This document shows, piece after piece, positions 7,387 to 55,622 of a stretch of DNA of 64,000 bases (within the stretch, counting starts at the first letter, position 1; every line of letters begins with the position of its first letter). The stretch is from positions 47,430,001-47,494,000 of the forward strand of contig NC_043014.1 in NCBI RefSeq assembly GCF_006345805.1. The letters run 5' to 3'. This DNA comes from Octopus sinensis. Its lineage: Eukaryota. The position numbers and the translations under genes were made by a program. A model generated the notes under the pieces. It had not been told where the DNA came from, did no database searches, and worked only from the letters and a program-made list of their open reading frames with translations.

Positions 7387-7427
7387 GTAGATATTACCAC
7401 ATTGTTTTATAGAACTTACATCATTGG

Positions 7428-7459
<32 letters not shown>

Positions 7460-7894
7460 ATAATATTGTTTTATATCAGTTATATACGTTGACATACCAT
7501 TCACATACATACCCCAAAGCACCTTAAATTATATATGTATATGTGTGTATTTGTATTTATGTCTGTGTATGTAGTCTATTATGTCATCATCATCATTTAA
7601 CGTCCGTTTACCATGCTAGCATGGGTTGGACGGTTCGACTGGGGTCTGCGAAGCCAGAAGGCTGCATCAGGCCCAGTCTGATCTGGCAGTGTTTCTACAG
7701 CTGGATGCCCTTCCTAACGCCAACCACTCCATGAGTGTAGTGGATGCTTTTTACGTGCCACCGGCACAGATGCCAGTCAGGGCGGCGCTGGCTACGGCCA
7801 CGTTCGGATGGTTCTCTTACGTGCCACCAGCACTGGTATCACAGCTACAAATTCCATTGATGTTGATAGATTACGATTTTGATTTTATGTATTT

Positions 7895-8309
7895 ACTAGC
7901 AGCATAGCCCGGCGTTGCCCGGTTATGTAAGAGCCCCTAGTAGGCAACGACTAATCCCAATCTAGTCCTTTCCCTCTAGGGAACGAAGGCGCATGTGTAG
8001 GTTGCAATGTCTTCTCTTCACTCGAATACTTCTGTGTATACGATGTTCCTAGCTGTCCCTAGCTGTCGAGTTGTGTCCCCTAGACAGAAAATGTGTTGCA
8101 TATAAAAAGCTTAGATTCTCGACCCCATGTCGAATTTATTGATTTTTCTCAGAACTGGAGGAACTTTTCAAAATTTTCGCTGCGTTAGTTTTGAATTATG
8201 ACATTGGGCTATATGTGTGTCAAGTTTCATCAGAATCGGTTGAAAGCCATGGTCAGGGTGAGGGTACAACCTGACAGACACACAAACTGCCGTTTATATA
8301 GAGAGAGAT
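7895..8309 (+). mobile_element. Non-autonomous Helitron/Helentron-type element (HINE/Lep1-like)
   Basis: Begins ACTAGCAGCATAGCCCGGCGTTGCCCGG, carries caagtttcatcagaatcggttga, and ends in ACAGAC repeats plus TTTATATAGAGAGAGAT. This matches the end architecture of Helentron-derived elements. Confidence 0.6.
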
Positions 8310-8620
8310 ATCATCATCGTTATTTAACATCAGTGTTCCATGCTGGCATGAGTTGAACAGCTTGACACGATTCATCAAGCCAGGGGGCTGTGTTGAACTT
8401 CACTTTCTGCTTTGGCTGGGAACACAAAATGTGGATGAAATACGTGCGGTTCTGCTCTCATATAATTTTTCAGCAGCTTCGTAAATAGTTCTGTAGTTAG
8501 AAGAGAAATGGGAGTGTTAGGCAGATGAGTTGTGGATAAGGCTTGACACAGACAGAGCGAGCGTGGAGGTATGAACACTAACCACTTTCAGGACTTCGTT
8601 CATTTGTTAAGATGGACATA

Positions 8621-8815
8621 GGCGCAGGAGTCGCTGTGCGGTAAGTAGCTTGTTTACCAACCACATGGTTTCCAGTCCCACTGCATGGCACCTTGGACAA
8701 GTGTCTTCTACTATAGCTCGGGCCGACCAAAGCCTTGTGAGTGGATTTGGTAGACGGAAATTGAAAAGAAGCCCATCGTATATATATATATATATATATA
8801 TATCATATTGTATAT

Positions 8816-8861
<46 letters not shown>

Positions 8862-8993
8862 ATATGCTTGTGTGTGTTTGGTGTCCGTGTTGGTCCACCT
8901 AGCATTGCCTTGACACCCGATGCTGTTGTGTTTATGTCCCCGTTACTAGCGGTTCGGCAAAAGAACCGATAGGAATAAGTACTGGGCTTACAA
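8621..8993 (+). mobile_element. tRNA-derived SINE family A
   Basis: GGCGCAGGAGT(G/C)GCTGTG head, internal (TA)n/(TG)n tract, 3' end truncated at the junction with an inverted copy. Confidence 0.85.
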
Positions 8994-8995
8994 AT

Positions 8996-9323
8996 CGACC
9001 CCGGGACTATTCTTTGTAAGCCCAGTACTATTCTTCGGTCTCTTTGCCGAACCACTAAGTGACGGGGACGTAAACACACCAGTATCGGTGTCAAGCAATG
9101 CTAGAGGGAAAAACACAGGTACACAAACACACACACACACACACACATATATATACATACATATATACGACAGGCTTCTTTCAGTTTCCGTCTACCAAAT
9201 CCACTCACAAAACATTGGTCGGCCCGGGGCTATAGCAGAAGACACTTGCCCAAGATGCCACGCAGTGGGACTGAACCCGGAACCATGTGGTTGGTTAGCA
9301 AGCTACTTAACACAGCAACTCCT
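8996..9323 (-). mobile_element. SINE family A
   Basis: Reverse-complement copy adjoining 8621-8993. Confidence 0.85.
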
Positions 9324-9559
9324 CTCGCTTTTTCTCTCAACACATTTACACTTTGTCATGCATGCACACTGACATTGCACATCCAGTGAAGCATATTAGC
9401 TTAATTTCTTTCCAGTTTTTGCATGTCCTCTACACTCACGACCCATGTTTCACTACCATGTGGCATTGCTATTTGTGCACAAGCATCATACAATCACCCT
9501 CTGCATCATACATCCCCTCTGCAGCTCTGCATTTCTGAAGACAAGTGGGATGAGAAATC

Positions 9560-9800
9560 ATACAATCTGCCTTCCACTGTCAGAGAGAGAGAGAAGCCTT
9601 CATTACCAAAAGCAGTAAAAACTCTATGAATTTTCTCCAGCTGATTTTTGTTCTAGTAACTATATTTCAGAACATCCTCCTCCACTTCTAAATTGGTCAC
9701 CTAGGTAACAGAAACTATCTACTTCTAGAAATCCTTTTGGGTATTTGAGAAAATCTCATTCCTATGAAGTCTTAGTGTTTATCATTCATGTACATATGCC
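9560..9800 (-). mobile_element. RTE-clade LINE fragment
   Basis: Minus strand reads roughly LEVDSFCYLGDQFRSGGGCSE...AWRKF..LL....GFSL, the RTE segment also seen at 49400. Confidence 0.65.
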
Positions 9801-10861
9801 ACATACAAACTCTACTTTCTCTATTAACCTCTGTTTGTGATTCTTCTACACCTCTTATGTGCCCATATCTACACTGGTTACACTAAATGCAATTTGTAAC
9901 TCTACTTTTCTATATATATATCAAGCAAGGTCATTTCCTTGATAGAAGAACTGTCTGTTTTCTTGCTTGCAAGAACTTTGATCTTTGCTAATGCATATAT
10001 GCATATACATACATGTGTGTGTGTGGCTGTGTTGGTATGCAGATATGGAGTTTCCTTTGTAACCATGGGGTTTCAAGTTCTAGTTCGCTGCAGGGAACAT
10101 TTGGCAGACATCTTCTATTGTAGCTTATCAGTGGCTTGTTAACAGAATTGGTGGGTGAAAACTGCATGGAAGCCTCTTGTGTACATGTGTGTGTGTGTGT
10201 GTGTGTGTGGTTTACATTCCATGTTTTCACCTGAAAGTAGTGAGCCAAACACCGACATTAGGTTGATTATTCTGTGTCAAGCAATCACCTCCACCCTCTG
10301 CAGTTCTGCATTTCTGAAGACAAGTGGGATGAGAAATCTCTTAGTTGAACGACAGGTGAAGGTTAGCAACAGGAAGGGAATCTGACAGTAAAACAGTACC
10401 TCAATAATATTCACCCAATCCATGCTGGGAAAATGAATATAAAACGAATGAATGAACATCATATTTATCAACATCAACTTCTATCTATTCATCCATCACC
10501 TACACACACACACACATGTATTCAAATGAATATGGTACTTAAGTTAAAGGCACCAGAATTTGGTATGGTATTATCCATATAAATCAAATGGGGTGAGTAT
10601 ATTCAAAATAAGCAACAAGGATATCCAAGATAGTGTAGTACAATCGTTTCATGCTACTTCATTTTATTAAACACTGTAAGTATTACATCAGTTTTAAAAT
10701 GTTGAGCAATCTTCAGCCACATATAGAATTTTTTAATTAAACGGACAATGCACATTTTTACACTTATTTCATTTGCCAACATTACAAAGAGGGTAGATAT
10801 ATAGACAGAGAGATTAATTTCATTAAGAACATGGTGGTAGTATGTCCTTCTCTATCTGTAG

Positions 10862-10900
<39 letters not shown>

Positions 10901-12034
10901 TGTATACTGTACACTCTCTCTACATTCTTATACACCACATAACACCTCATATATTTGGTCAGTTAGGCAGCCTCTAGACGGTTACTCAGCCTTCCAAAAT
11001 ACCCGCCAAATTTTCCAATTGCATGTTTACTGTTTTAAGTATGGGAATATACACGGGACTTATATAGTTCCTCATGTACAAAAGAGACAGGATGATCATG
11101 GCTGGAACATCTTTGATTGTAGGTCTACTGGCTCTGAGCTGACCTTGGGCTAAACAACTTACCTCGTATGGCTAAGATGGTGGGGGTGCTGATGGTGCTA
11201 CAACATTCCAGTTTCTGAATAAGACAGTATTACAAACTGTTGCCATGGTTACTGTATCACGGGGGGGGGGTATTAGGGGTAGGAAGGTGGTAATTGGGAG
11301 AAACAGAATAGCTTATACAATAGTGAGTTGTGAGTTCGAATCCAGCTAATGTTAAAACCTTTCATTTCTGGAGACTAATAGTCTACATTAAGGTTTAACT
11401 CTCTCCCTTCTTATTTGTTGGCCCCTACATTATAATATATTATTATTATTATTACCATCTCTGACTCATTGTTTACCCCCTCCTCCTTCAGCACTTATCC
11501 TCCTCCCTCTCTCATTTCTTTTCTATCTGTTGCACTTACTCCCCCCCCCACCACCTAAGGTCCTGAGACAGTTTCATATCAATAAAGCCACACCTTCATC
11601 AAATGTTACAGTAGTAGTGTGGATGGAGATGGTGGTGGTGGTGGTGATGGTGGTGGTGGTGATGATGATGATGGTGGTGGTGGTGGTGGTAGTATGGTTC
11701 GTTGGTGGTGTGGCTGATGTTATACCATTTCACAGCCCAATCACATCACATCACAACCACCACCAACACCACCACCCACATTGCTATGACCAATGCCTTT
11801 AACACTACCACCCACACAACCACCTCATTATAACAATACTACTACTACTGCTATTACTACACTAATTTTGGTGAGAAATAAAATTGTGTGTGTGTGTGTA
11901 TGAATGTATGTATGTACGTGTGTGTGAGTATAGATAGATAGATATACAAACACACATATACAAGTATATAATTCTGTGTTTATATAGACATATATATCAA
12001 TCTATATATCTATATATGTGTATATATATATCTA

Positions 12035-12074
<40 letters not shown>

Positions 12075-12146
12075 CACACAGAATTATCTATCTATCTCTC
12101 TCTCTCTCTCCTCTCATCCCTCTCTCTTCTCCTCTCTCTCTCTATA

Positions 12147-12198
<52 letters not shown>

Positions 12199-12257
12199 AT
12201 ACACATACACACACACACACACATATACTATGAATTATCTCTCTGTCTATCAATCAT

Positions 12258-12290
<33 letters not shown>

Positions 12291-12887
12291 AAGATACAGG
12301 TGGTAATTTTGGCTGTTATGAAATATTTCAGTGTAATTGACTCATTGTGAGGGTCTTGTGGTGAAATGTGAGAGTGACACTGTTGACACCATCAGCACCA
12401 TCACCACCATCATCATCATCACCATCATCACCAACTTCATTATCACCACCATCACCGCCACTACCACCACCACCATCACAGCCATCACTATTGTCACTGC
12501 CGCCGTGGTGACATGCGATGATGCCATTACATGCTGCACCCCCCCCTCTTTCCAACACCGTCTCTAAATACCATTGCAACAACTAATGCAACCCCCCACC
12601 CATCCACCCACTCGCTGCTGCTGCTGCTGCTGTCGATGTTGCTGCTGCTGCTGTTGCTACAGAAATCAATACTGCTAGAATTTCCATCTCTCCGTTCTGT
12701 AAGATAATGTAGTGGAGGGGGGTGCAGAGATGTCTGTTCTGGCATTGCTTCTTTCTCACCTCTCTCTTCCCCCCCACACGCACGCGCGCGCGCTCGCGCA
12801 CACATAACACACACAGCCAGACAGTGTAAGCTAGCTGCACATTGTCTGCACTACTGCGTCACACCAGTACCGGCAGAGTACGGCACC

Positions 12888-12950
12888 ATGCAACACGTCT
12901 CCTACCGGACTACGTATCCATGGTTCTACCGCGACCAGTCTGGCTTCAAG
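12888..12950 (+). CDS. Candidate alternative first coding exon (MQHVSYRTTYPWFYRDQSGFK)
   Basis: GGCACCATG start context, 21 open codons, AAG|GTAAAT phase-0 donor compatible with acceptor 55623. Non-repetitive, CpG-retaining sequence after a CpG-rich (CG)n tract at ~12775-12800. No transcript evidence available. Confidence 0.6.
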
Positions 12951-14069
12951 GTAAATCATTCGTAGAGTTGTCAAATGTCTCACCTGTGTCGTCCATGCTT
13001 CAGTGACTTCTCAGCAACATCCTCTCTTAGTCACCTATGGTTACACTTCAGTGAATTCTTGTCACCATCTTTCTGTGTATGTATGTCTGTCTCTGTCTGT
13101 GTCTCGCCCACATTATTCCTTTAAGGAACTGGCAATCCTTGTGTTGTATCTTTGATAAAGTAAGGCAATATGACACTCACCTGCGTCGTGCTTCATTGAA
13201 TTCTTGTGATAATCATTATTAGTCATGTTTCCCTCCATCAATATGGTACATCACCTTCTGAATCCCACCTTTTACGCACTTCACTGAGTTTCAATTACAG
13301 ATCAACATCCATCTCTCACCTGTGACACACTTCACTGAATTCTAATCTCACAGTCCTGGTTTTGAGTTTTCGTTCATTCTTTGTTTATTAAAACTGTTTT
13401 GATTTACCTTTCACACCACCTTCATACTATTCATCATCATCATCACCATCATCTTCCTCATCATCACCGTTATCATCGTCACCAGCATCATTACTATTAT
13501 TATCATCACTACCATCACCACCATCATTAATACCCTCATCACTTCTATTACTACGATCATCATCGATGATCATCGTCATCACTACCACCACACTACCTCC
13601 ATCACCACCACCACCCGTCAATACTATTGTCACTACCATAGCCACCACCATCTTCATCATCATCTTCATAAAGCTATAGTTCCTGTAACCCTTCAAAATA
13701 GGTCACACCCCCCCCGTATACCGTTCCCCCCACAAGCCACCAACCTGTGAATTATGTTCTTGAGGTGGAATGAGGTGAAACATGAAAGTGGAGTGGGGGG
13801 GGAGGTGTCTGTTATTGGAAAGTCTGACTTCGGAGACAGACAGACAGACATTGCATGCTGGTCTATATATGCACATTCTTATACACACTTGAAAACATAA
13901 ACATATACACATGCTTAACTATATACTAGCATGAGGGTATATATTAAAAAATACAGACGCATACACACATAAACAGATGCCTATACATATATACACACAC
14001 AAACACATACACATCTGTTGCACAATATACACATAATCACACAATATGAACATGACCACATGCATACAT

Positions 14070-14096
14070 AAGTATATATATATATATACATATATG

Positions 14097-14134
<38 letters not shown>

Positions 14135-14176
14135 ATGTATATATATATGTATATATTGTATATATATGTATATATA

Positions 14177-14244
<68 letters not shown>

Positions 14245-14245
14245 T

Positions 14246-14279
<34 letters not shown>

Positions 14280-14346
14280 TATATATGTATATATATATAT
14301 GTATGTATGAGCGTTATATATGTAAGTATAACGTATGTTCTGTTTG

Positions 14347-14402
<56 letters not shown>
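14070..14402. repeat. (TA)n microsatellite field
   Basis: About 330 bp. Similar TA/TG/CA fields at ~12010-12290, 15080-15620, 17280-18030, 26425-26690, 31440-31570 (GATA) and 46480-46745. Confidence 0.9.
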
Positions 14403-14408
<6 letters not shown>

Positions 14409-15102
14409 ATATGTACAATTACTCAATAGTCAAGATAAAACTCTGAGTTTCAGAGTTTCTGATGGTCAGATAACCGAAGAGATGGTGCTGTGGATTTCCA
14501 CTTCGGCATCTGAAACTCAGAGTTTTATCTTGACTATCGAGTAATTGTAACATATTATTTTTATAAATAAATTTCCTCTATTTACATAGTATTGAGGTCT
14601 CTTTCTTTCTTTTGTTATCTTACCGTTTTTACCAATATATATATATATATATATACACATACACAATGAACACATACTCATACGAAGATACGAAAAGATG
14701 CATCAGAACTCATACACATATATATATATCTTCACATAGACACACACATATATACACACATCCATATTTGTACAAATGATGTCAAAATATTCCACCATAA
14801 TGCATTTTTGCGTCGCACATTCCTAGTCTGGAACTTTGAGCAAGTGTCTATCGATGCTGGACGTGATTCTTACGGTTTATACTCACACGACTACGATGTA
14901 TTTAGATATATGTATAGCATTTATGTATTTTTAATTATAAATGTCGTATATTGGGAATGAATGAGTAAAGCAAACCTTTCTTTCCAGTTTTTTTGTGCCC
15001 AATATAAAATCTTTACTGCTCTCCTTTAAACTACTTTCATTTTATTTTAACTTCATATATGTTCTCTCTCTTACTCTTTTCATATATATACGTGTGTATG
15101 TG

Positions 15103-15139
<37 letters not shown>

Positions 15140-15181
15140 TGAGAGAGAGTTTGTGTGTGTACATATATATACGTATGTACA

Positions 15182-15220
<39 letters not shown>

Positions 15221-15528
15221 ACATACATATATATATGTGTGTACATATGTATGTCCCCGTAACTTAGCGGTTCGGTAAAAGAGACCGATAGAATAAGTAC
15301 TAGGCTTCCAAAGAATAAGTCCTGGGGTCGATTTGCTCGACTAAAGGCAGTACTCCAGCATGGCCATAGTCACATGACTGGAACAAGTAAAAGAGTACAT
15401 ACGTACGTACATAAACATACATACGTACATACATATATGTATATATATGTATGTATATGTACATACATATATATATGTATGTGTATATATATATATATAT
15501 TTATGCATATGTAAATATACTTATGTAC

Positions 15529-15574
<46 letters not shown>

Positions 15575-15945
15575 ACATGTATATATATGTATGTGTATAT
15601 ATATATACATACATATGCATAATAATTGTCATGCATTAAATATTTATTAAACATTGGTGTGGTGCTTCTATGTGTACACACACACACACACACAAACACA
15701 AATATACACACACACATATCTTTAGATATCCAGTGTCCGGGATGGAGTCGAGATATCTGATGAACTAAGCTGCTCCTTCATGAAACTTTGAGTAATGCAC
15801 AGTTGAGTCAACTTGTTAATAAAATATATTCAGCTTCTGCAGTACATCCTGAGGACCTTTGTTGTCATTCATTCGTACACTCCCTTCTGTATGCCTGTAT
15901 CTTCCTGTGCTTCTCCCCCCCTCTTTCTATGTATCTACGTATGTG

Positions 15946-15976
<31 letters not shown>

Positions 15977-21870: not shown

Positions 21871-23389
21871 CTTCTCATTCTACAGATGAAATTGTTAGAA
21901 TGAGCACCGTCCGTTCGTGGCCGTTTGCCAGCTCTGTCTGGCCCCGTGTCGGTGGCACGTAAAAGCACCATCTGTTCGTGTTCGTTGTCACCCTCGGCTG
22001 GCCCCCGTGCCGGTGACACGTAAAAGCACTGTCCGTTCGTGGCCGTTCGCCAGCTCTGTCTGGCACCTGTGCAGGTGGCATGTAAAATACACCCACTACA
22101 CTCGCGGAGTGGTTGGCATTAGGAAGGGCATCCAGCCGTAGAAACACTGCCAGATCTGACTGGGCCTGACGAAGCCTTCCAGCCTCACAGACCCCAGTTG
22201 ACCCGTCCAACCCATGCTAGCATGGAAAGCGGATGCTAAATGATGATGATGATGATGATGAGGGAAAAAACTGATCTGAAGTAAGATATTTCATTTCTAG
22301 AAGAGAAATAGTTAATTGATTCAACTCCATTAAGTGACTTCTACGCCTTCTGTTCTTATTGATCCAGGACGTACGAAATGCAAATTTAACCTTGAACTCA
22401 AAATGTGAACACACATATTAAGACATTGTTGCTCTACTGACTCTACCATCAACTATTATTGCCACACAACAAGACACTGTTACTTTGCCTATTCTACCTT
22501 CTACTGTCCTAAAGATGAATAATATGGTTTCTAGGTGTGTCAGTGTTAATCATAAAATGTTTATTTCCTCAAGGATCAATGTTAGGGCGTTTTATGTTCT
22601 GTGTTCCTTAATTATTTCCATGTTGGTGTTCCATAATGTTTTTCATCTCTTCTTTATTACAACCTTTTTCAATTACATGTTGGCACCATTTTGCAGAAAC
22701 TTGAAAATCCACAAAAAGTGGCTGTGGATGGGGAGGGTGGGGAAGGAGGGGGGAATGAGACAGCAGAATATTACTTTGAGGAATGCGAAGAAAAAAAAAA
22801 TATTGATAAGTATTTTAAAACATATAGGTTAGTTCAAGATCTCTGAAGAATGCTGGAGGGAGGGAAAAAAAAAGAGAGAGAAAAGTGCAAGAGTCTGCTA
22901 GCAATATTGTTGATGTTAGTAAAGTCAATTCCTGCAGAAACACAGCTTCCATCCTAATTCAAACAATTCCAAATAAAACATAACGAACGCATCAACGCCA
23001 GACAAAAACCTGCAGCAGTTCTTGGAACTATTTAATATCCTACTGAGAGGATTTTGTGTATCTAAAGTCCTCAGGCTTTTGGAATAAGGAGTTGGGGGTT
23101 CGTTTCCTTATAATTAACAACTTGCACATTGTTTATACAAACCCCAACTAGGAATGGAGACGGTGTTGGTTTCTGAATTAGGCACAAGGCCAACACTCGG
23201 GAGGGGTTTGGTCAGTACTTTTGACTCAGCCCCACCCAAGTACCTGATTGGTATTTTATTGTAGTGAACCCAGAGGGATGGAAGGTAAATTTGACCCCAG
23301 CAGGATTTGAGCTCTGAATGTAAAGGGGTAGAACAAATGGACCAAGGCGTCTTGTCTGACGCTCTACCGATTCTGTTACATGATATTAA

Positions 23390-27648: not shown

Positions 27649-28504
27649 ATATATATATATATAGCTGGTATCTCATCAATATATCGACTGGAAGCCTGAA
27701 AGCTTTCAGCAGTCTTGGGTTGTGTTGGCTTCTCCATCATTTCTGAACAACATTGATATTACCAGGGCGATTGTTGTGATCCACACTGTAGCATACACTA
27801 CCCCCACCTCCTCTTTATTGGCCTTGTGTTGGCTGCTACAACCAGCTGTAACTATTCCAACTTGCCATTGGATTTCTTCTTCTTTGCTGCCAGTTGTGGT
27901 CTTACGCAATTCTGCCATATTCATCATCATCATCATCATTTAGCGTCCACTTTCCATGCTAGCATGGGTTGGACGGTTCGACCAGGGTCTGGGAAGCCAG
28001 GAGGCTGCACCAGGCCCCATTCTTGATCTGGCAGTGTTTCTACGGCTGGATGCCCTTCCTAACGCCAACCACTCCGTGAGTGTAGTGGGTGCTTTTTAAG
28101 TGCCACCTGCACAGGTGCCAGATGAGGCTGGCAAACGGCCACGATCGGATGGTGCTTTTTACGTGCCACCGGCACAGGGGCCAGACGAGGCTGGCAATGG
28201 CCACAATGGTGCATTTTACGTGCCATTAATAACTCAAACTTAAAACAACCCATACCAACATGGAAAAGCAGATGTAAAAATGATTATACACACACAACAC
28301 ACACACACAAATGTGTGTGTGTATATGTGTGTATCAGTTTACTGTTTTCAAAGTTTTGAATACATCATATACAGTCTATACATAGACATATACACCTACA
28401 GTTTCCAGAATTCTGCTGTCTATGGTTTAAATTACAGTTTGGCAGTGGCGTAAGAGTGGTGGTGATGATACAGCGGGGGAGGGAATATTTATTAACTTGA
28501 ACAG

Positions 28505-30572: not shown

Positions 30573-31020
30573 TTAAACAAATCCATGCCATTAGCACTTT
30601 CTTCTATTCTGATTGTCTTTTACCTCTAACCATATGAAGACTCTGTTACGTCTGCCTAAGTTCACTAGAGTTGCACCGATGGTTGTATAAAATATGGGCG
30701 GTTTTTCAGATGCTTCCTGTATTTCAAATTAGTGATTCTCTCATCACTAATTTAACTTTGCATGATTTTGGTGAATATAGTGAGTATGCATATCATCATC
30801 ATCACTTAACATTCAGTTTCCAAGCTGGTATGCGTAAGAGGATTCAACAAGTTCTGACAAATTAGGCGTCTGTGTCATATATTGCAGTTTCCACATTGGG
30901 ATGGGCCTTTTTCTACAGCAGGATGCCCTTTCTAATGCCAACCACCCCAGAGTGTACTGGGTGCCTTTTTCATGACACCAACACAAGTGAAGGTCATCTT
31001 ATAACTTGCAAGGCTAAAGG

Positions 31021-36047: not shown

Positions 36048-36607
36048 GAAGTGTGTACTTGAGTACTGGTATCAAGGTAATCCATTAATTCCCCCAACTC
36101 CCTCTCAAAATTGCTGACCTTGTTCCTAAGTTAGAATGAATTTGCTTCCTCACTACATTGCACCTTGGACAAGTATCTCTTCTACTATAGTCCCAGACCA
36201 ACTAAAACCTTGTGAGGGGATTTAGTAAACAAAAACTGAAAGAAGCCCATCAGAATCATCATCATCATCATTGTTTAACGTCTGCTTTCCATGCTGGCAT
36301 GGGTTGGATGGTTTGACTGAGGACCAGCAAGCCAGAAGCCTGCAACAGGCTCTAATCTAATCTGGCGAGGTTTCTACAGCTGGGTGGCCTTTCTAATGCC
36401 AACCACTCCAAGAATTTAATGGATATGTTTTACATGCCACTAGCATGGGAACCAGTCAGGCAGCACTGCTTTTTATGTCCCATTGGCACAGACACCAGTC
36501 AGGCGGTACTGGCAACGGCCACATCAACGATTTCACTTGACTCAGTTGGTCTTCTCAAGCACAGCATACTGCCCAACGACTGAAGGATATATATATATAT
36601 ATATGTA

Positions 36608-39279: not shown

Positions 39280-39615
39280 ACATAGTACTTGCATTCTCCG
39301 AGGGCTGTGGATGTAGTACTCACATCCTCCGAGGGCTGTGGATGTAGTACTCTCATCCTCTGATGGCTGTGGATGTAGTGTAGTACTTGCATCCTCCGAG
39401 GGCTGTGGATGTAGTACTCGCATCCTCCGAGGGCTGTGGACATAGTACTTGCATCCTCCGATGGCTGTGGATGTAGTACTCTCATCCTCTGATGGCTGTG
39501 GATGTAGTGTAGTACTTGCATCCTCCGAGGGCTGTGGATGTAGTACTTGCATCCTCCGAAGGCTGTGGATGTAGTACTTGCATCCTCTGAGGGCTGTGGA
39601 CATAGTTATTGCATC
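39280..39615. repeat. 31-bp minisatellite with a 129-bp higher-order unit
   Basis: Unit GTAGTACTTGCATCCTCCGAGGGCTGTGGAT, about 10 copies; a variant with extra GTAGT recurs 129 bp apart. Confidence 0.9.
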
Positions 39616-40687
39616 CTGGCCAAACCAGTGATCAGAATAATGTTGATGATGATGATAATCCTTTCTAATATAAGCACAAGGCCTGAAATTTTGTGGGGGG
39701 CTAGTCAGTTACATCGACCCCCAGTGTTCAACTGGTACTTACTTCATTGACCCTGAAAAGATGAAAGGAATTATAATAAAAATAATGATACATAGTCGAT
39801 ACATAATTAACCTCCTCTGAAAAAAAAAATTGCAATTTTCCAGTGTAAACTCCTTGTAAAGGTATGTATGTATGTACATGTGTATACTGTATGCACAAGT
39901 ACATATTTGTGCTTAATATATGCACATATCATCATCATCATCATCGTCGTTGTTTAATTTCCGCCTTCAATGGATATGTACATGGAAGTGTTTTTGTAGG
40001 TACATAGATGTGTGTGTGTGGATAATTGATACACTGGCAAATATGTCTACTGCTTGCAATGCCTGTTTTATCATCCCTGGCAACGGTTGCATGAAATAGA
40101 AGCGAGCTGATTTCCCCCCAGGAGAGGAAGTCTATTTACTGCAACTAACATTCCCCCCGCGATCTGGTTGTTATCATTTCCTATCAGCTAAATAAATAAA
40201 TACAAGTACTAGCAGCAAAATACTCTGAGTAACAACTCATGCAGACTCAACTGTGAATATTAGATATTCCCCTCTACCACTTTACTCCTGGGTTACACGA
40301 ACCTCTGACATTCCAACCCACTGCCATCTCTGTCAACATTGCCTTGTATAGACATACCTGCTTCAGAGGACTGTTCTCCTGTCACACATCCCTCTCATCT
40401 CTGTCACTTGTGCTTCTCTCTCTATAAAGAGGTCGGTGAGCAAGCAGAGCCGTGACGTTGTAAAGTTGCATCGAGGTTACGGCTACCTGTCTAGTGCTGG
40501 TGCCATGAAAAATGCACCCAGTACATTCTGTAAAATGGGTGGTGTTAAGATGGGCATTTAGTTATAGAAGCTAAGCCAAAGTAAAACACGCAAACGAAAT
40601 GGGGTCCTTGACCCATCAAGATGAGCAGTACCCACTAAACATGTACTAACTCATCCAACCTGTACCAGTAGGGAAAGTATATGATCA

Positions 40688-41890
40688 TCATTGTTTAATG
40701 TCCCTTTTTCCATGCTGGTATGGGATGGGTGACTCGGCAGGAGCTAGCAAGGCCAGAGGCTGCACAAGATTCTGCAGTCTACTTTGGCTTGGTTTCTACA
40801 GTTGGATGCCCTTTCTAATACCAACCACTTTACAGAGTATGCCGAATGCTTTTTACATGGCACCAACCCCAGTGCCTTTTACATGGCACCAGTGCCTTTT
40901 ACGTTACACCAGTGCCTTTTACATCACACCAGTGCCTTTTACGTCACATCAGTGCCTTTTACATCACATCAGTGCCTTTTACGTCACATCAGTGCCTTTT
41001 ACATCACACCAGTGCCTTTTACGTCACATCAGTGCCTTTTACATCACATCAGTGCCTTTTACGTCACATCAGTGCCTTTTACATCACACCAGTGCCTTTT
41101 ACGTCACATCAGTGCCTTTTACATCACATCAGTGCCTTTTACGTCACATCAGTGCCTTTTACATCACACCAGTGCCTTTTACGTCACATCAGTGCCTTTT
41201 ACATCACACCAGTGCCTTTTACGTCACATCAGTGCCTTTTACATCACATCAGTGCCTTTTACGTCACATCAGTGCCTTTTACATCACACCAGTGCCTTTT
41301 ACGTCACATCAGTGCCTTTTACATCACACCAGTGCCTTTTACGTCACACCAGTGCCTTTTACATCACATCAGTGCCTTTTACATCACATCAGTGCCTTTT
41401 ACATCACACCAGTGCCTTTTACGTCACATCAGTGCCTTTTACATCACATCAGTGCCTTTTACGTCACATCAGTGCCTTTTACATCACACCAGTGCCTTTT
41501 ACGTCACATCAGTGCCTTTTACATCACACCAGTGCCTTTTACGTCACACCAGTGCCTTTTACATCACACCAGTGCCTTTTACGTCACATCAGTGCCTTTT
41601 ACATCACACCAGTGCCTTTTACATGGCACCAGCACTAGTGCTTTTTATGGGGTACCAGTGCCTTTTACGTGGCACCAGTGCCTTTTACATCACACCAACA
41701 CCAGTGCCCTTTACATAGCACCAGTGCCCTTTACATGGCACCAGTGCCTTTTACATGGCACCAGTGCCTTTTACAGGGTACCTGTGCCTGTTACGTGGCA
41801 CCAGTGTTTTTTATGTGGCACCAGCACTTGTGTTTCTTACGTGGCACCAGCACCAGTGCCTCTTACATGGCACCAGCACCAATGCATTTT
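40688..41890 (-). repeat. Family C element whose internal module expanded into a 20-bp minisatellite (about 37 clean units, ~40890-41620)
   Basis: Unit AGTGCCTTTTACRTCACAYC, continuous with the family C tail on the left. Confidence 0.9.
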
Positions 41891-42559: not shown

Positions 42560-43112
42560 AAATGTAGCAGTGAAGGATCTAACCTGGCTAATAGCTGTCT
42601 ACCTAAAGAAGGGTTTGCCAGCCGTAGGTAGGTTGGGGTCGGTCGGTCGGGCTGGCTGGTTGGCTGGCTGGCTGGCTGGCTGGCTGGTTGGTTAGCTGGC
42701 TGGTCCTCTGAGACAGACAGACAGACAGGCAGTCGGACAGAATGAGTGGTGGGGAGAAAGCTATGAACAAGCCAAGCTCGGTAGCGCACACAAGTACTGC
42801 TATTATTACTCTGTGTATATCTATCTACACATGAACAATGTTAGTGTTGGACTGCTGATGTTGCTTCCCCCTCCCCCCCCACCGCCGTCCTCCTCCTCCG
42901 ACGCCGCCGTCGCCACCACCACCATCACCAGCGCCGACGACGACGACAACAACAAGTACTTTCTTTTCCCCTCCTCCTCTTCTCTTCTCTCTCTTCTAAA
43001 CTTGTGGTGGAACAAACACACAAGGCAAGTCAGTTCTGTGTGAAGAAGAAGAAGAAGAGATTTAAGAAACTTTTTACAGGATGTTCAGGGACTTACAGCA
43101 GGAAAGGAGGAG
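42560..43112 (+). promoter_or_regulatory. GC/CpG-rich promoter or 5'UTR-like island ending at a donor site
   Basis: Retained CpGs (ccgccgtcc, gacgccgccgtcgcc, gacgacgacgac) and (GGCT)n, ending in GGAG|GTAAAA at 43113. Stands out against the AT-rich background. Confidence 0.35.
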
Positions 43113-46100: not shown

Positions 46101-46204
46101 GACTTCACAAGGGAGTAGTACTATGAGGGTTTGTGAAAGGGATTGCAGCATCCAACAGATTTAAAGGTGGTGGTGTTGTTGTTGTTGTTGTTGGTCAGAA
46201 AAGG

Positions 46205-46366
46205 ATGTCTGGAGGAGGAGGAGGAGGAGGAGGTCGGCCGCATGGTCGGTGTTTTAGTAACTTTGACTTGGAACAGGATTGGCAATCCCAACTGGATGAT
46301 GAGGAAGAGCTCTCTGAACTACAAGTTGATAACATTTCCGACTTCTTTCGGGAAATGACTGTAGAG
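46205..46366 (+). CDS. Candidate alternative first (or cassette) coding exon (MSGGGGGGGGRPHGRCFSNFDLEQDWQSQLDDEEELSELQVDNISDFFREMTVE)
   Basis: In-frame TGA upstream (46124-46126), ATG at 46205, 54 open codons, GAG|GTTAGC phase-0 donor followed by a pyrimidine-rich intron-like tract. A possible phase-0 acceptor CAG ends at 46198. Confidence 0.6.
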
Positions 46367-47479: not shown

Positions 47480-47892
47480 TTTTACTCTTTTACTTGTTTC
47501 AGTCATTTGACTGCGGCCATGCTGGAGCACCGCCTTTTTTAATCGAGCAACTCGACCCCGGGACTTATTCTTTTGTAAGCCCAGTACTTATTCTATTGGT
47601 CTCTTTTGCCGAACCGCTAAGTAACGGGGACATAAACACACCAGCATCGGTTGTCAAGCAATGCTAGGGGGAAAAACACAGACACACAAACACGCACACG
47701 CATATATATATATATATATACATATATACGACGGGCTTCTTTCAGTTTCCGTCTACCAAATCCACTCACAAGGCTTTGGTCAGTCCGAGGCTATAGCAGA
47801 AGACACTTGCCCAAGGTGCCACGCAGTGGGACTGAACCCGGAACCATGTGGTTGGTAAACAAGCTACTTACCACACAGCCACTCCTGCGCCT
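47480..47892 (-). mobile_element. SINE family A
   Basis: Full-length copy. Confidence 0.9.
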
Positions 47893-48559
47893 ATATCTTT
47901 GAAGTATTATGTCATGTTTAGATGATTTTTTAGAGACACAACAAACTAAACTCCTTTTTTTCCCCCCCCCAGTTTTCTGAACAGTAAGGGACAAGCCCAT
48001 AGCCTAATGATGCAGTTTGAGCATGGACCCTGTTGAAGGTAGTTGTTTGTGAAGAACTGGATTTTTGTTAAAGAAGATGATGGAACGAGGCAGAGAGAGA
48101 TATGAATGGATGTAGTTCACTGTGTTGTAGAGAATTACACTTGATCTCACTGTGTGTTGGGCACTTGTTGAACAAGGCCCTGGTTACTGTAGTCTCTTTA
48201 AAGGTTTCTGCATGGTCTCACTTATTCATAGGTGTGGTGTGGGTTTGCTATACAACATCTAGGTTACATGAGGGCTATTGTGTCAAAGAAGGTGTTATTG
48301 AGTTATGAAATGTGGGCATGGCTGTGTGGTTAGGGAGCTTGCTTCCTAGCTACGTGGTTCGGGTTCAGTCCCACTGCGTGGCACTTTGGGTAGGTGTCTT
48401 CCGCTATAGCCCCGAGCCGACCGGAGCTTTGTGATTGAATTCGGTAGGCGGGAGTTACTGCCGTGTGTATATGTGTGCGTATAGCTGCTCAGTGCCTCTC
48501 CGAAAAAGAGAGAGAGTATCATTTTTGTGTGTGTGTGTGTGTGTGTGCATATATTCAAC

Positions 48560-49870
48560 AGGGTACCTCAATCCCTGATGTGGTGGTCTCTGCAGAAGCT
48601 AGATGAATGGCTCATGAGAGCTGTCCAAGCCATGTGCAGGGATGCTGTTAATAACATCACAGCTAACTATGAGTACAGTGGCAAATTTAGCATGTAGGCT
48701 GGAGTTCAGTAGGGTTCAGTCCTGTCCTCTATACTATTTATTATTGTCCTCCAGGCCATCACAGAGGAGTTTAACCCTTTAGTGTTTAAACCGGCCATAT
48801 CAGGCCAAAGTTGTCTTCCTGTTTTATGCTCAAACCAGCCAGCTCTGACCTCTCACACCTACCCTACAAAGTCATTCTAAAAATAAACAGGGAGATCATC
48901 AAAATCTCAGAGTTACAAGATGCTGTACAATTAATTTAAAACGATGTGATTAAACAGGCTTTACATCTGACAGAGTAATCTAAATGCTAAAGGGTTGCTT
49001 GTGGGAACTCCTTTATGCTGGTGACCTTGTTCTGACTGTCAAAATAGTTGCAGAATTAGAAAAGGAATTCTAGGTGTGAAAGCAAAACCTGGAATCAAAG
49101 GGCCTTAAAATTTACGTAGCAAAAATCAAAGTCTTAGTAAGCAGGAAAACTGGCAGTACACTAAACCCTTCATGAAGATATCTGTGTTCAATATCTAGAA
49201 AAGGTGTAGATAGAAATTCCTCCATTTGCTGTATCCAATGCAAGCTATGGACACAGAAGAGTTGTGGCAGAATCACTATGAAATTAACAAAGACTTTGTC
49301 TGTAGTAGATAGACAGGAGTAATAAACACTAAGAACCCACCAGAAGTGACCTAATTAGTAGTAAAAGAAGATGTTTTGAAAGTATAATTGCTCGAATAAG
49401 AACAGGCTGGAGAAAGTTCAGAGAACTATTACCACTGTTGGTAACAAAAGACCTCTCTTTCAAAGTAAAAGATATATTGTATAATGCTTCCATACAAACA
49501 GCAATGAAACATGGGCCATGAATGCAGGGGACATGTAAAGACTAGAAAGAAATGAAGCTAGCATACTCTGCTGTACAATGTCTGTGTGCATGTATGATGT
49601 GTTGAGAGGAAAAATTTGGCATTAGAGGTCAGATGTAGTGTGCATGGGAGAGTTTGCACTGGTATGGCTTTGTAATGTATGTGGATAAAGACAGCTGTAT
49701 TACAAAGTGATCGCAAAATGTGGATTGAACCTGAGGAAGAGGGAGACTTAAGAAAATGTGGGACCAAATAATGAAGTCTGACCTCAGGTTGTTGAACCTC
49801 AAGGAGATGACAAGGGACCAAAATGAGTGGCAATTTATCATGCTCAAAAAGGACCTGTCCTTCCAGTAAA
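48560..49870 (+). mobile_element. Degraded RTE-clade LINE reverse transcriptase region (interrupted by a MITE)
   Basis: Fragments read DEWLMRAVQAM, QGSVL/LLFIIVLQAITEEF, WELLYAGDLVL (YADD-like motif), ARIRTGWRKFRELLPLLVTKDLS. Many stops and frameshifts. Confidence 0.85.
48775..48994. mobile_element. piggyBac-like MITE (family D) inserted in the RTE relic
   Basis: TTAA-CCCTTTAG...ATGCTAAAGGG. Internal sequence similar to 30352-30572. Right TTAA damaged. Confidence 0.75.
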
Positions 49871-50189
49871 AATGAGGTCCTAAAAACATGTTGTCACTGT
49901 CGATGCAACACCCTATTAGCACCTATCAAACCTTCCCAGCAACTCGTTTTCATAATGCCCACCCCTACCTCATTCCTATCTAAGGTATTATTTATTGCTC
50001 AGCTGAACTGCATATATTCCATTCCCTTTTTGTACTTCTAATAATCTGTCTTCTTGGAACCACACCCCTTGTCACCCATCCTGCATCATTCCTAACACTA
50101 TTCCTTACCGCTATATGTCCACTGAACACCCATTTCACCTAAACACCTTATTACCTCAGTCATCAACACCCCTTTTTTTTTTTTCCTTT

Positions 50190-50596
50190 TTTCTTTTTAC
50201 TTGTTTCAGTCATTTGACTGCGGCCATGCTGGAGCACCGCCTTTAGTCAAGCAACTCAACCTCAGGACTTATTCTTTGTAAGCCCAGTACTTATTCTATC
50301 GGTCTCTTTTGCCGAATCAACCGCTAAGTGACGGGGACGTAAACACACCAGCATCGGTTGTCAAGCAATGCTAGAGAGACAAACACAGACACACAAACAC
50401 ACACTTGCATATATATATATATATATATATACATATATACGACGGGCTTCTTTCAGATTCCGTCTACCAAATCCACTCACAAGGCTTTGGTCGGCCCGAG
50501 GCTATAGTAGAAGACACTTGCCCGAGGTGCCACGCAGTGGGACTGAACCCGGAACCATGTGGTTGGTAAACAAGCTACTTACCACACAGCCACCTA
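50190..50596 (-). mobile_element. SINE family A
   Basis: Near full-length copy. Confidence 0.9.
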
Positions 50597-51420
50597 TAAC
50601 TTCCTATATCCTCTTCACTATGTACACTTGATCTCTGTCACTGTGCATCTTTTCTCCCCTCTACACTTCACCTCACATGCTACCTATCCATCTGCCTTTA
50701 TTCTCTGTTCATCTTCTTGTACCTCGAATGTATGCCCTGATACCTCATCTCCACCATTCTACCTCCCTTTCTTGCTGGGGGTAGCCATGTACATCCTCTA
50801 CAGCAAGACACCTATTCCTGTCCCTCTTTCCTATTTTAGCCTTTGTTCACCTGGCACAAAAACTACCTCCCTCTATACTGCAACCCCTTCCCCACTCTGT
50901 GAAAGGGTCTTGTCTTTCATGTACTTAGTGACCCCCACAAGTACTGATACCACAAACAAAAAAAAAACACCCAGTACACTCTGTAAAGTGGTTGTCATTA
51001 AGAAGAGTATCTAGCTGTAGAAACCTTGCTAAAGCAGACACTGGAGACCAAAACGGCCCCTTATATTAGTTGGATGCTGTCAAATCGTTTAACCCATACC
51101 AGCATGAGATACAGATGTTTAATAATGATGATGATGATAAATCCCAGTTTTAGAAAAGGTCTACCATGTCCATGCATGCTTTAAGAGGCAACTAAAAGGC
51201 TTGGTAACCACAATGCTCATCTGATTGTAAAACCCTCAGAAAATCCATGCCAGCGTAAAAGCAAGCATAAAATGATGATGATGATGATGTATAAATTCCA
51301 CTCAAATAAGATGGTTATGACTTGTAGAGCAGAAGAATTTCTAAGCACCATAGAAACCTCTTTCAAACTGTCTTTTATTTTTGATTTGTCCCTATGTCAA
51401 GAGACATATGTGACAGTTTT

Positions 51421-51454
<34 letters not shown>

Positions 51455-51469
51455 GTGTGTGTGTGTGTA

Positions 51470-51527
<58 letters not shown>

Positions 51528-51529
<2 letters not shown>

Positions 51530-51852
51530 AGCACTCCATCGGTTACGATGACGAGGGTCTCAGCTGATACGATCAGTGGAACAGCCTCCTCGTGAAATTA
51601 ACGTGCAAGTGGCTGAGCACTCCACAGACACGTGTACCCTTAACGTAGTTCTCAGGGAGATTCAGCGTGACACAGAGTGTGACAAGGCTGGTCCCTTTGA
51701 AATACAAGTACAACTCATTTTGGCCAGCTGTGTGGACTGGAGCACCGTGAAGTAAAGTGTCCTGCTCAAGGACACAATGCGTCGCCGGGAATTGAACTCA
51801 CGACCTTACGATCATGAGCCAAATGCCCTAACCACTAAGCCACACACCTTCA

Positions 51853-51853
<1 letters not shown>
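51528..51853 (-). mobile_element. tRNA-derived SINE sharing the family G 3' tail
   Basis: Reverse complement of the family G tail (cgtcgtaaccgacggagtgc...gtgtcacgctgaat) joined to a different middle and a tRNA-like head. Confidence 0.75.
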
Positions 51854-51902
<49 letters not shown>

Positions 51903-52407
51903 ATATTCATTCATGTACATACGCATACAACAGACAATGTATATACTGTTAAGTATATTAATGGTGTATAATATTGTGTGTGTATGTCTGAGTGCGTCAC
52001 TATTCACACATAATACTACTAGTTACCTCAGTATATTTAACTAATCTAGTTTCTCCTCTAACTAGTTCTGGACAATTAGTTAAGAGGTCAGTTGTTGCCA
52101 ATAGTTACTACACTGGATCCATTAGACAGGAACTGTTACTTTTAATAGACTTACTTCCTATCCCCGGGCAGATTCCTCTCTCATTCATTTAGCACAGTAG
52201 GAAGATGGGTGGGTAGGTGGATAAACTCCAGCCTTATAGAAGCTCAAGATATAGAAAGAGTTAACTCAAGTAATGGTTAGTTGTTTGACTTCCCACCACG
52301 GCCACCATTATTTATGATAGCTTAATCACTTGGGGAGAGCAACGTTGATGACACCATCTTTTAGGGTGTCAGAGATATGCAAGAGAGAGGGAAGAATTTA
52401 TCATTAA

Positions 52408-52809
52408 CCTCTTCGCATTTAGATTATTCTGTCATGCATTCGGCTTTATTTCAATGATGTGGTTGTTTATTTTTAGAATGACATTGTCGGGTAGGTGTGA
52501 CATGTGAGAGGTAGATCAAACTGGTTTTAACATAGCACAGCTAGAATATTTGGGCTGTGTATGACCAGTTTAACCCTTTTGTTACCATATTTATTTTGAG
52601 GTGCTCTGTGTTTCTTTCAATTAATTTTAAATATAACAAAGAATTTAGTAAAATAACTTAGTTATCGTTAAGCTGGTGTTAGGAACGTAAATTGTAACTA
52701 AGGTCTGGTGGAAGATTTTAATTCAAAACTTATGAAAACAAGACGTTTGTACTCAGAGCCAGAGCCGGTTTCAGCCAGGTTGGTAACGAAAGGGTTAAAT
52801 GCTAAGGAG
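52408..52809. mobile_element. Family D MITE (opposite orientation) with a nested family E MITE
   Basis: TTAA at 52404-52407 and 52810-52813, degenerate TIRs, internal similarity to family D. Confidence 0.7.
52574..52794. mobile_element. piggyBac-like MITE (family E), nested
   Basis: TIR CCCTTTTGTTACCA/TGGTAACGAAAGGG (13/14 match), TTAA duplicated at 52570-52573 and 52795-52798. Confidence 0.85.
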
Positions 52810-53068
52810 TTAAACCCAAAACCTGGCTTGAGTACTTGCAACCAAGTGGGTTTTACTAAAGGCTTTCAAGGAAACGACAGGGATCAATTACCTTTATTTA
52901 TAACATGTTGGCCTGGTTATTATTACTGTTAGAATTAGCTTCAGTAATAATTACTTTTTCTAAACTCTTTTTTTTCTTCTTTGTTAGAGCAGCCTGTCCC
53001 AACCTTTTAACATCTTGACCATTTTGACCAACAAATCCTCTTCAACATTTTCCTTTTAAAATATTTAA

Positions 53069-53247
53069 CCCTTTAGTATTCAGATTAGTCTGTCAAGTGT
53101 TATGCTTATCTATTCATGATGTTTTAAATTAGTCATGCATTATCTCGTAGCTTTAAGATTGCCGTAATTTGACTGTATATTTTGAGAATAACATTGTAGG
53201 GTAGGTGTAAGAGGCCAGATACGGCTGCTGATTGGAATGCTAAAGAG
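53069..53247. mobile_element. Family D MITE
   Basis: TTAA-CCCTTTAGTATT...AATGCTAAAGAG-TTAA. Confidence 0.75.
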
Positions 53248-53264
53248 TTAAATATAAAAACAGT

Positions 53265-54495
53265 TATCATCATCATCATCATTGTTTAATGTCCGCTTTC
53301 CATGCTGGCATGGGTTGGATGGTTTGAGGACTGGCAAGCCAGAAGGCTGCACCAGGCTCCAGTCTGATCTGGCAAGGTTTCTATGGTTGGATGCTCTTCC
53401 TAACGCCAACTACTCTGAAAGTGTAATTAATGGGTGCTTTTTATGTGCCACCGGCACAAGGGCCAGTCAGGCAGTACTGGCATCAACCACACTCGAATGG
53501 TGCTTTTTATGTGCCACCAGCACGGGAGCAAGTCAGGCGGCACTGGCAACAACCATGCTCAAATGGTGGTTTTTATGTGCCACCAGCACTAGGCATCAAC
53601 CATGCCCGAATGGTGCTTTTTACGTGCCACTGGCACTGGTATCAACCACACTTGAATGGTGCTTTTTATGTGCCCCAAGCACCAGTCAGGTGGCACTGGT
53701 ATCAACCACACTTGAATGGTGCTTTTTATGTGCCACTGGCACTGGTATCAACCACACTTGAATGGTGCTTTTTATGTGCCCCAAGCACCAGTCAGGTGGC
53801 ACTGGTATCAACCACACTTGAATGGTGCTTTTTATGTGCCCCAAGCACCAGTCAGGTGGCACTGGTATCAACCACACTTGAATGGTGCTTTTTATGTGCC
53901 CCAAGCACCAGTCAGGTGGCACTGGTATCAACCACACTTGAATGGTGCTTTTTATGTGCCCCAAGCACCAGTCAGTGGCACTGGTATCAACCACACTTGA
54001 ATGGTGCTTTTTATGTGCCCCAAGCACCAGTCGGTGGCACTGGTATCAACCACACTTGAATGGTGCTTTTTATGTGCCCCAAGCACAGTCAGGTGGCACT
54101 GGTATCAACCACACTTGAATGGTGCTTTTTATGTGCCCCAAGCACCAGTCAGGTGGCACTGTATCAACCACACTTGAATGGTGCTTTTTATGTGCCCCAA
54201 GCACCGTCAGGTGGCACTGGTATCAACCACACTTGAATGGTGCTTTTTATGTGCCCCAAGCACCAGTCAGGTGGCACTGTATCAACCACACTTGAATGGT
54301 GCTTTTTATGTGCCCCAAGCACCGTCAGGTGGCACTGGTATCAACCACACTTGAATGGTGCTTTTTATGTGCCCCAAGCACCAGTCAGGTGGCACTGGCA
54401 TTGACCATACTTGAATGGAGCTTTTTACATGCCACCGGCATGGGTGCCAGTCAGGCGGCACTGGCATCGGTGACAACAACGATTTCACTTGACTA
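53265..54495 (-). repeat. Family C element whose internal module expanded into a 60-bp minisatellite (about 12 units, ~53630-54390)
   Basis: Unit GGCACTGGTATCAACCACACTTGAATGGTGCTTTTTATGTGCCCCAAGCACCAGTCAGGT; three successive 60-nt lines are identical. Confidence 0.9.
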
Positions 54496-55048
54496 AATAT
54501 TTAAGTCACTCACTATGCAAGTACATCTCCATAAATATTTAATGATATTTACAATTGCCTCTTTGAGGGGAAATATTCTACAGAATTTGTTTGCAGTAAA
54601 TGTTGTGTTGTGACTTTTATTATGCTTCTTGAAGTTTAATCTAGAACATTCATTGACATTTCATCACATATTTCAAAAGTAAAAAATTTTTGTTTTTACA
54701 ACTTTTCACAATGTGGCACAGTTTGAATTACGACCCAAGCACAACAGGGCTAACATGTTGAAAGCATTTGCTGCATGTTGTATTGCAGTTACCTGTCTAA
54801 TTAGTGTGGTGAGGTTACTTGTGTAACAGTGTGGTGAGATTGTCTAATTAGTGTAGTGAATTTACCTGTTTTATAGTAAGGTGAGGTTATTACTGTTAGA
54901 TTGCCTGTCTAATTAATGTATATCAACCATGCTATACAGTACTTACCTGTATCACCTGTCTAACTCTATGTAATAATATTAGTCTTTTAGTCTCAGTTCT
55001 GTGGACTGCATCTAATCCTGTCTACTATCATTGTTTCTATTCTCAACA

Positions 55049-55438
55049 GTGTGGAGGCGCAATGGCCCAGTGGTTAGGGCAGCGGACTCGCGGTCGTAGG
55101 ATCGCGGTTTTGATTCCCAGACCGGGCGTTGTGAGTGTTTATTGAGCAAAAACACCTAAAGCTCCACGAGGCTCTGGCAGGGGATGGTGGTGATCCCTGC
55201 TGTACTCTTTCACCACAACTTTCTCTCACTCTTACTTCCTGTTTCTGTTGTACCTGTATTTCAAAGGGCCGGCCTTGTCACTCTCTGTGTCACGCTGAAT
55301 ATCCCTGAGAACTACGGTAAGGGTACACGTGTCTGTGGAGTGCTCAGCCACTTGCATGTTAATTTCACGAGCAGGCTGTTCCGTTGATTCGGATCAACCG
55401 GAACCCTCATCGTCGTAACCGACGGAGTGCTTCCATCC
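55049..55438 (+). mobile_element. tRNA-derived SINE (family G), full length
   Basis: A box TGGCCCAGTGG, B-box-like GGTTTTGATTCCC, CpG-rich (young); flanked by a 77-bp direct repeat. Confidence 0.8.
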
Positions 55439-55622
55439 AATAATATTAGTCTTTTAGTCTCAGTTCTGTAGACTGCATCTAATCCTGTCTACCATCATTG
55501 TTTCTATTCTCAACAAGTATTTTGCCCCCATCATCATCATCATCATCATCATCATTACCACCACTAATCCCCTTCCAGTTTATCGCCCTAATCCTGACCA
55601 TGCTGTGTATTGTGTGTTTCAG

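Follow-up and report, generated by a model that had tools for sequence, protein, structure and literature searches.

Does the 48-kb intron that precedes the PX-domain exons of an ARHGAP32/CdGAPr-like gene in Octopus sinensis hold first coding exons of its own? The intron lies on contig NC_043014.1 of NCBI RefSeq assembly GCF_006345805.1, within a 64,000-nucleotide (nt) stretch (positions 47,430,001 to 47,494,000, forward strand) that holds the 5' part of the gene and that we refer to as the window; all coordinates below are those of the window. A first-pass annotation, made from the letters alone, had proposed that a battery of alternative first exons is hidden in this intron. Our analysis indicates that the intron very probably contains two first coding exons of internal transcription units, exon A (ending at 12950) and exon B (ending at 46366), both joining the same PX exon at 55623, with the PX, SH3 and RhoGAP domains kept and the N-terminus of the protein swapped.

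The gene and its canonical exons

Three exons of the gene were placed in the window by tblastn with human, Elysia and Argonauta proteins. These exons, and the intron in question, are as follows.

7302-7386, plus strand: canonical coding exon, (S)LSDGSTRFPKLEECAHFHYDFVELGQLQ, 85 nt, with AG at 7300-7301 before it and GT at 7387-7388 after it
7387-55622, plus strand: intron of 48,236 nt separating the motif exon from the first PX exon, containing both alternative first exons
55623-55853, plus strand: common acceptor exon and first PX-domain exon, LQLCEEDQENYHH...NITET (opening LQLCEEDQ...), 231 nt, 77 codons
63048-63140, plus strand: next constitutive PX exon, EMQELLQKYLKRFSSIAGSMIYCGSILNWLE, in phase 0 at both ends

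The first base of exon 7302-7386 finishes a split codon, and the exon ends in phase 0 with the peptide tail …RFPKLEECAHFHYDFVELGQLQ. Its peptide corresponds to residues 91-119 of isoform X1 in both O. sinensis and Octopus bimaculoides (100% identity) and is also matched by the Argonauta hians protein P0003, the gene of which spans 120 kb. Exon 55623-55853 is in phase 0 at both ends, has an acceptor (...gtgtttcag) with a good pyrimidine tract and a GTGAGT donor, and is common to all PX-containing isoforms compared. Querying 1.84 billion representative proteins with exon B plus the PX exon, we found a 2555-residue A. hians protein that is 91% identical over the PX exon and that reads through ...SLSDGSTRFPKLEECAHFHYDFVELGQLQLQLCE..., which confirms the canonical junction 7386>55623. 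The phase-0 join of these two exons, already read from the sequence in the first-pass annotation, is thus seen in the Argonauta protein as well. With the Argonauta protein as query we retrieved an Octopus cluster of 27 members (a 90%-identity cluster); the members listed for it comprise O. vulgaris models and RefSeq isoforms that belong to LOC106869848 in O. bimaculoides and to LOC115221295 in O. sinensis.

Residues from exon 55623-55853 and the following exon match the Pfam PX domain (PF00787) at 26.8-27.1 bits, against a cut-off of 21.6. The SH3 and RhoGAP domains are coded downstream of the window and were seen in the matching isoform proteins, with SH3_1, SH3_2 and SH3_9 matches in the N-terminal region and RhoGAP (PF00620, precomputed for P0152, P0003 and their relatives) following the SH3. 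The PX domain, the SH3-plus-RhoGAP pair and the pre-PX motif described below, taken here as marks of the subfamily, are all present, and judged by its sequence the gene is the Octopus orthologue of ARHGAP32/ARHGAP33/CdGAPr, with PX-SH3-RhoGAP architecture.

Two first coding exons in the intron

The coding parts of the two alternative first exons lie some way apart within the intron.

12888-12950, plus strand: coding part of alternative first exon A, MQHVSYRTTYPWFYRDQSGFK, with donor AAG/GTAAAT in phase 0, joining 55623
46205-46366, plus strand: coding part of alternative first exon B, MSGGGGGGGGRPHGRCFSNFDLEQDWQSQLDDEEELSELQVDNISDFFREMTVE, with donor GAG/GTTAGC in phase 0, joining 55623

Exon A consists of an ATG and 20 further codons (21 residues) and exon B of an ATG and 53 further codons (54 residues); both have an A at -3. 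The exon A peptide followed by LQLCEEDQ reproduces exactly the N-terminus of XP_029647312.1 (O. sinensis isoform X12, P0256) and of XP_014771254.1 (O. bimaculoides isoform X9, P0253). For exon B, the isoform lengths pointed to an unlisted O. sinensis isoform of about 2528 residues, and an exact-match look-up of the exon B translation joined to the O. sinensis downstream sequence identified it as XP_029647308.1 (isoform X10, P0281), the match extending through a run of eight glycines. X12/X9 and X10 therefore start from 5' coding exons that exclude one another, each bringing its own ATG and joined to one acceptor. For both exons the ATG, open frame and phase-0 donor proposed earlier, and the junctions 12950>55623 and 46366>55623, agree exactly with these isoforms. 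Isoforms X10 and X12 of LOC115221295 and X9 of LOC106869848 are the same object as that deduced from the raw sequence, with identical N-termini and an identical PX junction.

It follows that the exons are not hidden, as had been supposed, since both are already annotated in RefSeq, where the records of X10, X12 and X9 are labelled 'uncharacterized protein'. We regard exons A and B as ordinary alternative-promoter use that is already known in this sense. Among the top results of our literature search there was no paper on octopus alternative first exons at an ARHGAP32/CdGAPr-like gene.

Conservation of exon B in decapodiforms

The Octopus junctions are those of RefSeq computational models, and for the exon B type of junction support comes in addition from a spliced decapodiform RNA-seq contig. 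This cuttlefish-like Logan contig (L001, from SRR24189505) is 1677 nt long and encodes a 443-residue protein, P0275, that falls in the decapodiform cluster. P0275 begins MAEGSTRPCGGCFDEQMNNILWDDFTSKAAMDYSEISVPKVSELFRQLALE, then continues with LQLCEEDQENYHH..., the contig encoding MAEGSTRPCGGCFDEQ...SELFRQLALE/LQLCEED across the junction; the remainder of the protein is 98.5% identical to ARHGAP32 of Acanthosepion pharaonis and about 90% identical to Octopus. Nucleotides 328-561 of the contig align with window 55621-55854, and nucleotides 567-653 with 63054-63140, which shows that the same exon boundaries are used, at 55623 and at 55853/63048.

The N-terminus of P0275 is related to exon B. Pairwise BLASTP gives E = 8e-7 with 34% identity over 50 residues, both sequences ending at the junction, and in a six-frame search of the 64-kb window the only match to this N-terminus is 46226-46366 (E = 8e-4). 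The Smith-Waterman score is 60, compared with 21 +/- 4 for shuffled sequences, and none of 5000 shuffles reached 60. This homology, taken with the common junction, indicates that exon B, its start codon, its frame and its junction are common to octopods and decapodiforms. The in-frame stops upstream of the ATG in L001 further imply that it represents a genuine alternative 5' end, as opposed to a cassette exon.

A cassette reading had been considered for the 168-nt, frame-compatible segment 46199-46366 of the Octopus gene and was rejected: the segment is internal in no listed isoform, a form containing it would exceed X1, the longest listed isoform, and the cuttlefish-like transcript has the upstream stops just described.

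A protein search with P0275 as query found no further cephalopod N-terminal variants, and nucleotide comparison of the 5' untranslated region (5'UTR) and first exon of L001 with the window gave no match ahead of the PX exon. P0152, which has a 77-residue stretch identical to the query, escaped the word-indexed protein search, and negatives of that search are accordingly not read as absence; with the chimeric exon B plus PX query it returned two Elysia fragments only, without the identical Octopus and Argonauta proteins that other searches retrieved, and we discarded this negative.

Chance, noise and the case against two internal first exons

Several observations weigh against the presence of two genuine first exons. 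The first concerns the formal pattern of ATG, open frame and phase-0 GT donor, which alone is not beyond chance. When donors were scored with a simple weight matrix, 22 on the plus strand of the intron equaled or exceeded the real site at 46366 and lay at the end of a frame that runs open from an ATG for 20 codons or more; at a looser donor threshold the counts are 42 (plus strand) and 73 (minus strand). Phase 0 carries no weight here, being automatic when the frame is read from an ATG. Secondly, the Octopus isoforms themselves are computational models (Gnomon). Exon A has no detected counterpart outside Octopus, and its 21/21 identity in two Octopus species is weak evidence because the Octopus proteins are 96.5% identical overall. 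For exon B, a construct on the O. bimaculoides backbone found no exact match in the look-up, so that exon B there either differs by a residue or belongs to an isoform left unannotated. CpG is sparse immediately before exon B, where the 300 nt preceding 46205 lie at the 45th percentile, and the exon B promoter may be elsewhere.

On such grounds exons A and B might be dismissed as annotation artefacts or transcriptional noise, that is, cryptic intronic starts taken up by Gnomon that yield no functional isoforms. The computational origin of the models, the frequency of the pattern by chance and the mere 21 residues of exon A would all suit this explanation. It is nevertheless very improbable, since two Octopus species have independent annotations of exon A that give one and the same peptide, and exon B has a homologue in an assembled, correctly spliced decapodiform mRNA. 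Noise would not be expected to conserve an ATG, a frame and a junction across the octopod-decapodiform split. What lifts exons A and B above chance is thus the exact match to annotated isoform N-termini together with the homology to the spliced cuttlefish-like transcript. The 20 other formal candidates in the intron look like repeats or random open reading frames (ORFs), and the islands of exons A and B are single-copy in the window, flanking simple repeats aside.

Candidate promoters and the 5' end of exon B

CpG density differs between the candidate 5' ends: it is high round exon A and low at exon B, and an island near 43 kb is moderate in this respect.

12751-13050, plus strand: CpG-rich island round exon A, candidate promoter or transcription start site (TSS) region, with 18 CpG per 300 nt, which ranks near the 99th percentile for the window
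42701-43112, plus strand: candidate non-coding leader exon or promoter island, with donor GAG/GTAAAA and a CpG count at about the 91st percentile or higher

The exon A island ranks in the top three for CpG density among the 300-nt segments of the 64 kb. Two further islands had been described as promoter-like and as ending at donors, at 43112 and 34816. The GT donors are indeed present (that after 34816 reads GAG/GTAACC), and only the 43-kb island is moderately CpG-rich; neither island has transcript or homology support, so that this part of the proposal stands for the donors alone.

The donor of the 43-kb island, at 43112, might be spliced to the AG at 46197-46198. This raises the possibility that exon B is a second exon with a start codon (46199-46366), and that X10 starts at an upstream non-coding leader such as the 43112 island, giving the same protein from a promoter elsewhere. 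The AG stands 7 nt upstream of the exon B ATG, the 43112 donor is a suitable partner for it, and segment 42701-43112 is CpG-richer than the sequence immediately before exon B. The tract preceding 46199 is, on the other hand, G/T-rich and not pyrimidine-rich, and a TTTAAA box, some 40 nt before the exon B ATG, permits a local TSS. We hold a leader exon to be a serious possibility, if the lesser one, and a start at exon B itself the preferred reading. The cuttlefish-like 5'UTR, which resembles nothing in the window, does not bear on the 43112>46199 junction.

Few internal first exons and no paralogous array

The arrangement that we favor is one in which exons A and B, each with its own ATG and phase-0 donor, are spliced to the common acceptor at 55623 and would be transcribed from separate promoters. 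The X12/X9 and X10 proteins keep PX, SH3, RhoGAP and the long tail, and the canonical N-terminus of about 119 residues, including FPK...AHFHY, is exchanged for 21 or 54 unrelated residues.

Within the intron, two first exons are supported and not a battery. The gene's other N-termini (MFDVQNIYG..., MVDNSLHL..., MDGWRSK..., MWLCCRQQ... and MACLHLRL...) do not map to the window in a six-frame search. All five join an exon starting HGIVPIFD, which must therefore lie upstream of the window. The whole gene accordingly has many alternative 5' ends, two of which lie in intron 7387-55622. The N-terminus of O. sinensis X8, MACLHLRLCLQFNIRGM, and its decapodiform counterpart, MACLQVPLCLQFNVRGM (proteins P0265 and P0279), are conserved and both join the HGIVPIFD exon; this conservation points to a second ancient alternative first exon, upstream of the window.

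The convergence of several 5' exons on a common acceptor, and the presence of at least five further alternative N-termini that join an upstream exon, could suggest an array of the protocadherin or UGT1A type, in which many paralogous variable first exons are present and one is chosen at a time. Exon A, exon B and the canonical N-terminus, however, show no significant mutual similarity in an all-against-all BLASTP comparison, as tandem paralogues would; the exons encode short peptides, apparently without a domain, and there are only two of them in 48 kb. An array of this kind is extremely unlikely, the most improbable of the explanations that we weighed. The variable-first-exon/constant-exon design that had been put forward for this locus gives way, given the lack of similarity between A and B, to plain alternative promoters.

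The alternative isoforms omit a conserved pre-PX motif

Exon 7302-7386, which exons A and B replace, encodes a motif of the form FPK(L/M)xECAHFHY (FPKLEECAHFHY, window 7324-7359) and also the two residues that open PX strand beta1. Seven residues of the motif in the canonical protein (F99, P100, A106, H107, F108, H109 and Y110) do not vary in any of 47 homologues aligned from molluscs, arthropods, vertebrates and other animals; a second alignment, of 75 sequences, again shows no variation in HFHY. Isoforms X12/X9 and X10 are without FPKLEECAHFHY and keep the PX exon, in line with the earlier suggestion that a conserved pre-PX segment is dropped.

The FPK...AHFHY segment is more conserved than most PX positions, and a literature search found no paper that mentions it.

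We used AlphaFold2 models to place the exon junction in the structure. A first model, of X1 residues 1-321, was weak, with low confidence even in the SH3 domain, and the low predicted local distance difference test (pLDDT) score of the motif in it is not over-interpreted. In a model that includes RhoGAP, built with the 75 sequences, pLDDT is about 91 from L31 (X1 L115) onward, lower over HFHYDFVE (about 65-70) and less than 50 over ...FPKLEECA. The PX fold is modeled confidently, as three strands plus helices over X1 residues 118-236, and its strand beta1 (L118-Q119/L120-Q121-L122) straddles the exon junction with pLDDT of about 91. This confident placement of beta1 across the junction implies that the PX core is kept in the alternative isoforms. 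On these models, the alternative exons are predicted to replace the residues just before and at the start of beta1, and to drop the motif and the conserved far N-terminus.

The isoforms would then differ in whatever the invariant motif and N-terminus contribute, for example regulation or partner binding beside PX strand beta1; effects on lipid binding or localization, by tissue, had been suggested in the first-pass annotation and may follow. One may go further and suppose that the motif is a functional short docking or partner-binding element beside beta1, and that an exon B promoter predating the octopod-decapodiform split makes motif-less isoforms as a regulated switch of localization or of GTPase-activating protein (GAP) control. 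We offer this as a speculation that is clearly more doubtful than probable.

Gene models from a shark (P0321, Carcharodon carcharias), a tick (P0232, Amblyomma americanum) and a sea slug (P0001, Elysia marginata) start at or near the PX exon and are without AHFHY; these are either real alternative 5' ends or truncated models.

Repeats in the intron and window

The intron is rich in short interspersed nuclear element (SINE) copies, microsatellites and minisatellites. On both strands, the window has some ten matches to a SINE-like element of about 170 nt, of which three are partial or weaker; large minisatellites yield long spurious ORFs, one of 420 residues.

22090-22260, 3825-3987, 5021-5194, 7584-7746, 27921-28091, 30910-30963, 36255-36422, 40792-40829, 53266-53425 and 62763-62915, both strands: SINE-like matches
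40869-41796: minisatellite, unit of 20/40 nt in about 45/23 copies
53737-54427: minisatellite, unit of 59 nt in 11.6 copies
39283-39617: minisatellite, unit of 31 nt in 10.5 copies

Complex microsatellite arrays at 1264-3139 contain ORFs of up to 284 residues in several frames and on both strands, with His-, Gly-, Thr-, Val- and Pro-rich translations; these are not genes. A CpG peak at 21.9 kb was considered as an extra promoter and rejected, as it consists of a tandem repeat and a SINE, the tail of which has 10 matches in the window. Several CpG-rich spots that resemble promoters may owe their CpG content to SINE-like copies, a reading checked directly at 21.9 kb alone.

Relation to known systems

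The design seen here, exclusive 5' exons with their own ATG, a common acceptor and differing N-termini, is that of ordinary animal alternative first exons. What is particular to the Octopus case is that the skipped exon carries a motif invariant in 47 sequences. Clustered protocadherin and UGT1A arrays likewise have several first exons and one acceptor, but the Octopus exons differ from them in being few, short and mutually unrelated, and in encoding no domain.

Within the same family, vertebrate ARHGAP32 produces PX-RICS (isoform 1) and RICS (isoform 2), and here too N-terminal isoform diversity arises from the 5' end of the gene. RICS lacks the SH3 domain. The PX domain, which mediates phosphoinositide (PI4P) binding (PMC4799364, PMC4742909), is also missing from RICS (PMC4799364). 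The first-pass annotation had called on this long and short pair as a precedent. Octopus X10 and X12, in contrast, keep both PX and SH3 and exchange only the roughly 119 residues before PX, so that the vertebrate pair is not an equivalent switch.

Both Octopus exons were recovered, with exact coordinates and junctions, by reading raw sequence alone. Two features of the locus deserve attention: octopods and cuttlefish-like decapodiforms have one of the two first exons in common, and the isoforms made from both exons omit an invariant pre-PX motif without a described function. Autism- and schizophrenia-related phenotypes have been linked to vertebrate members of the ARHGAP32/33 family (PMC4799364, PMC4742909). 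Isoforms that carry the motif and isoforms that omit it, occurring side by side in one gene, offer a natural way to learn what role the motif plays in this family.

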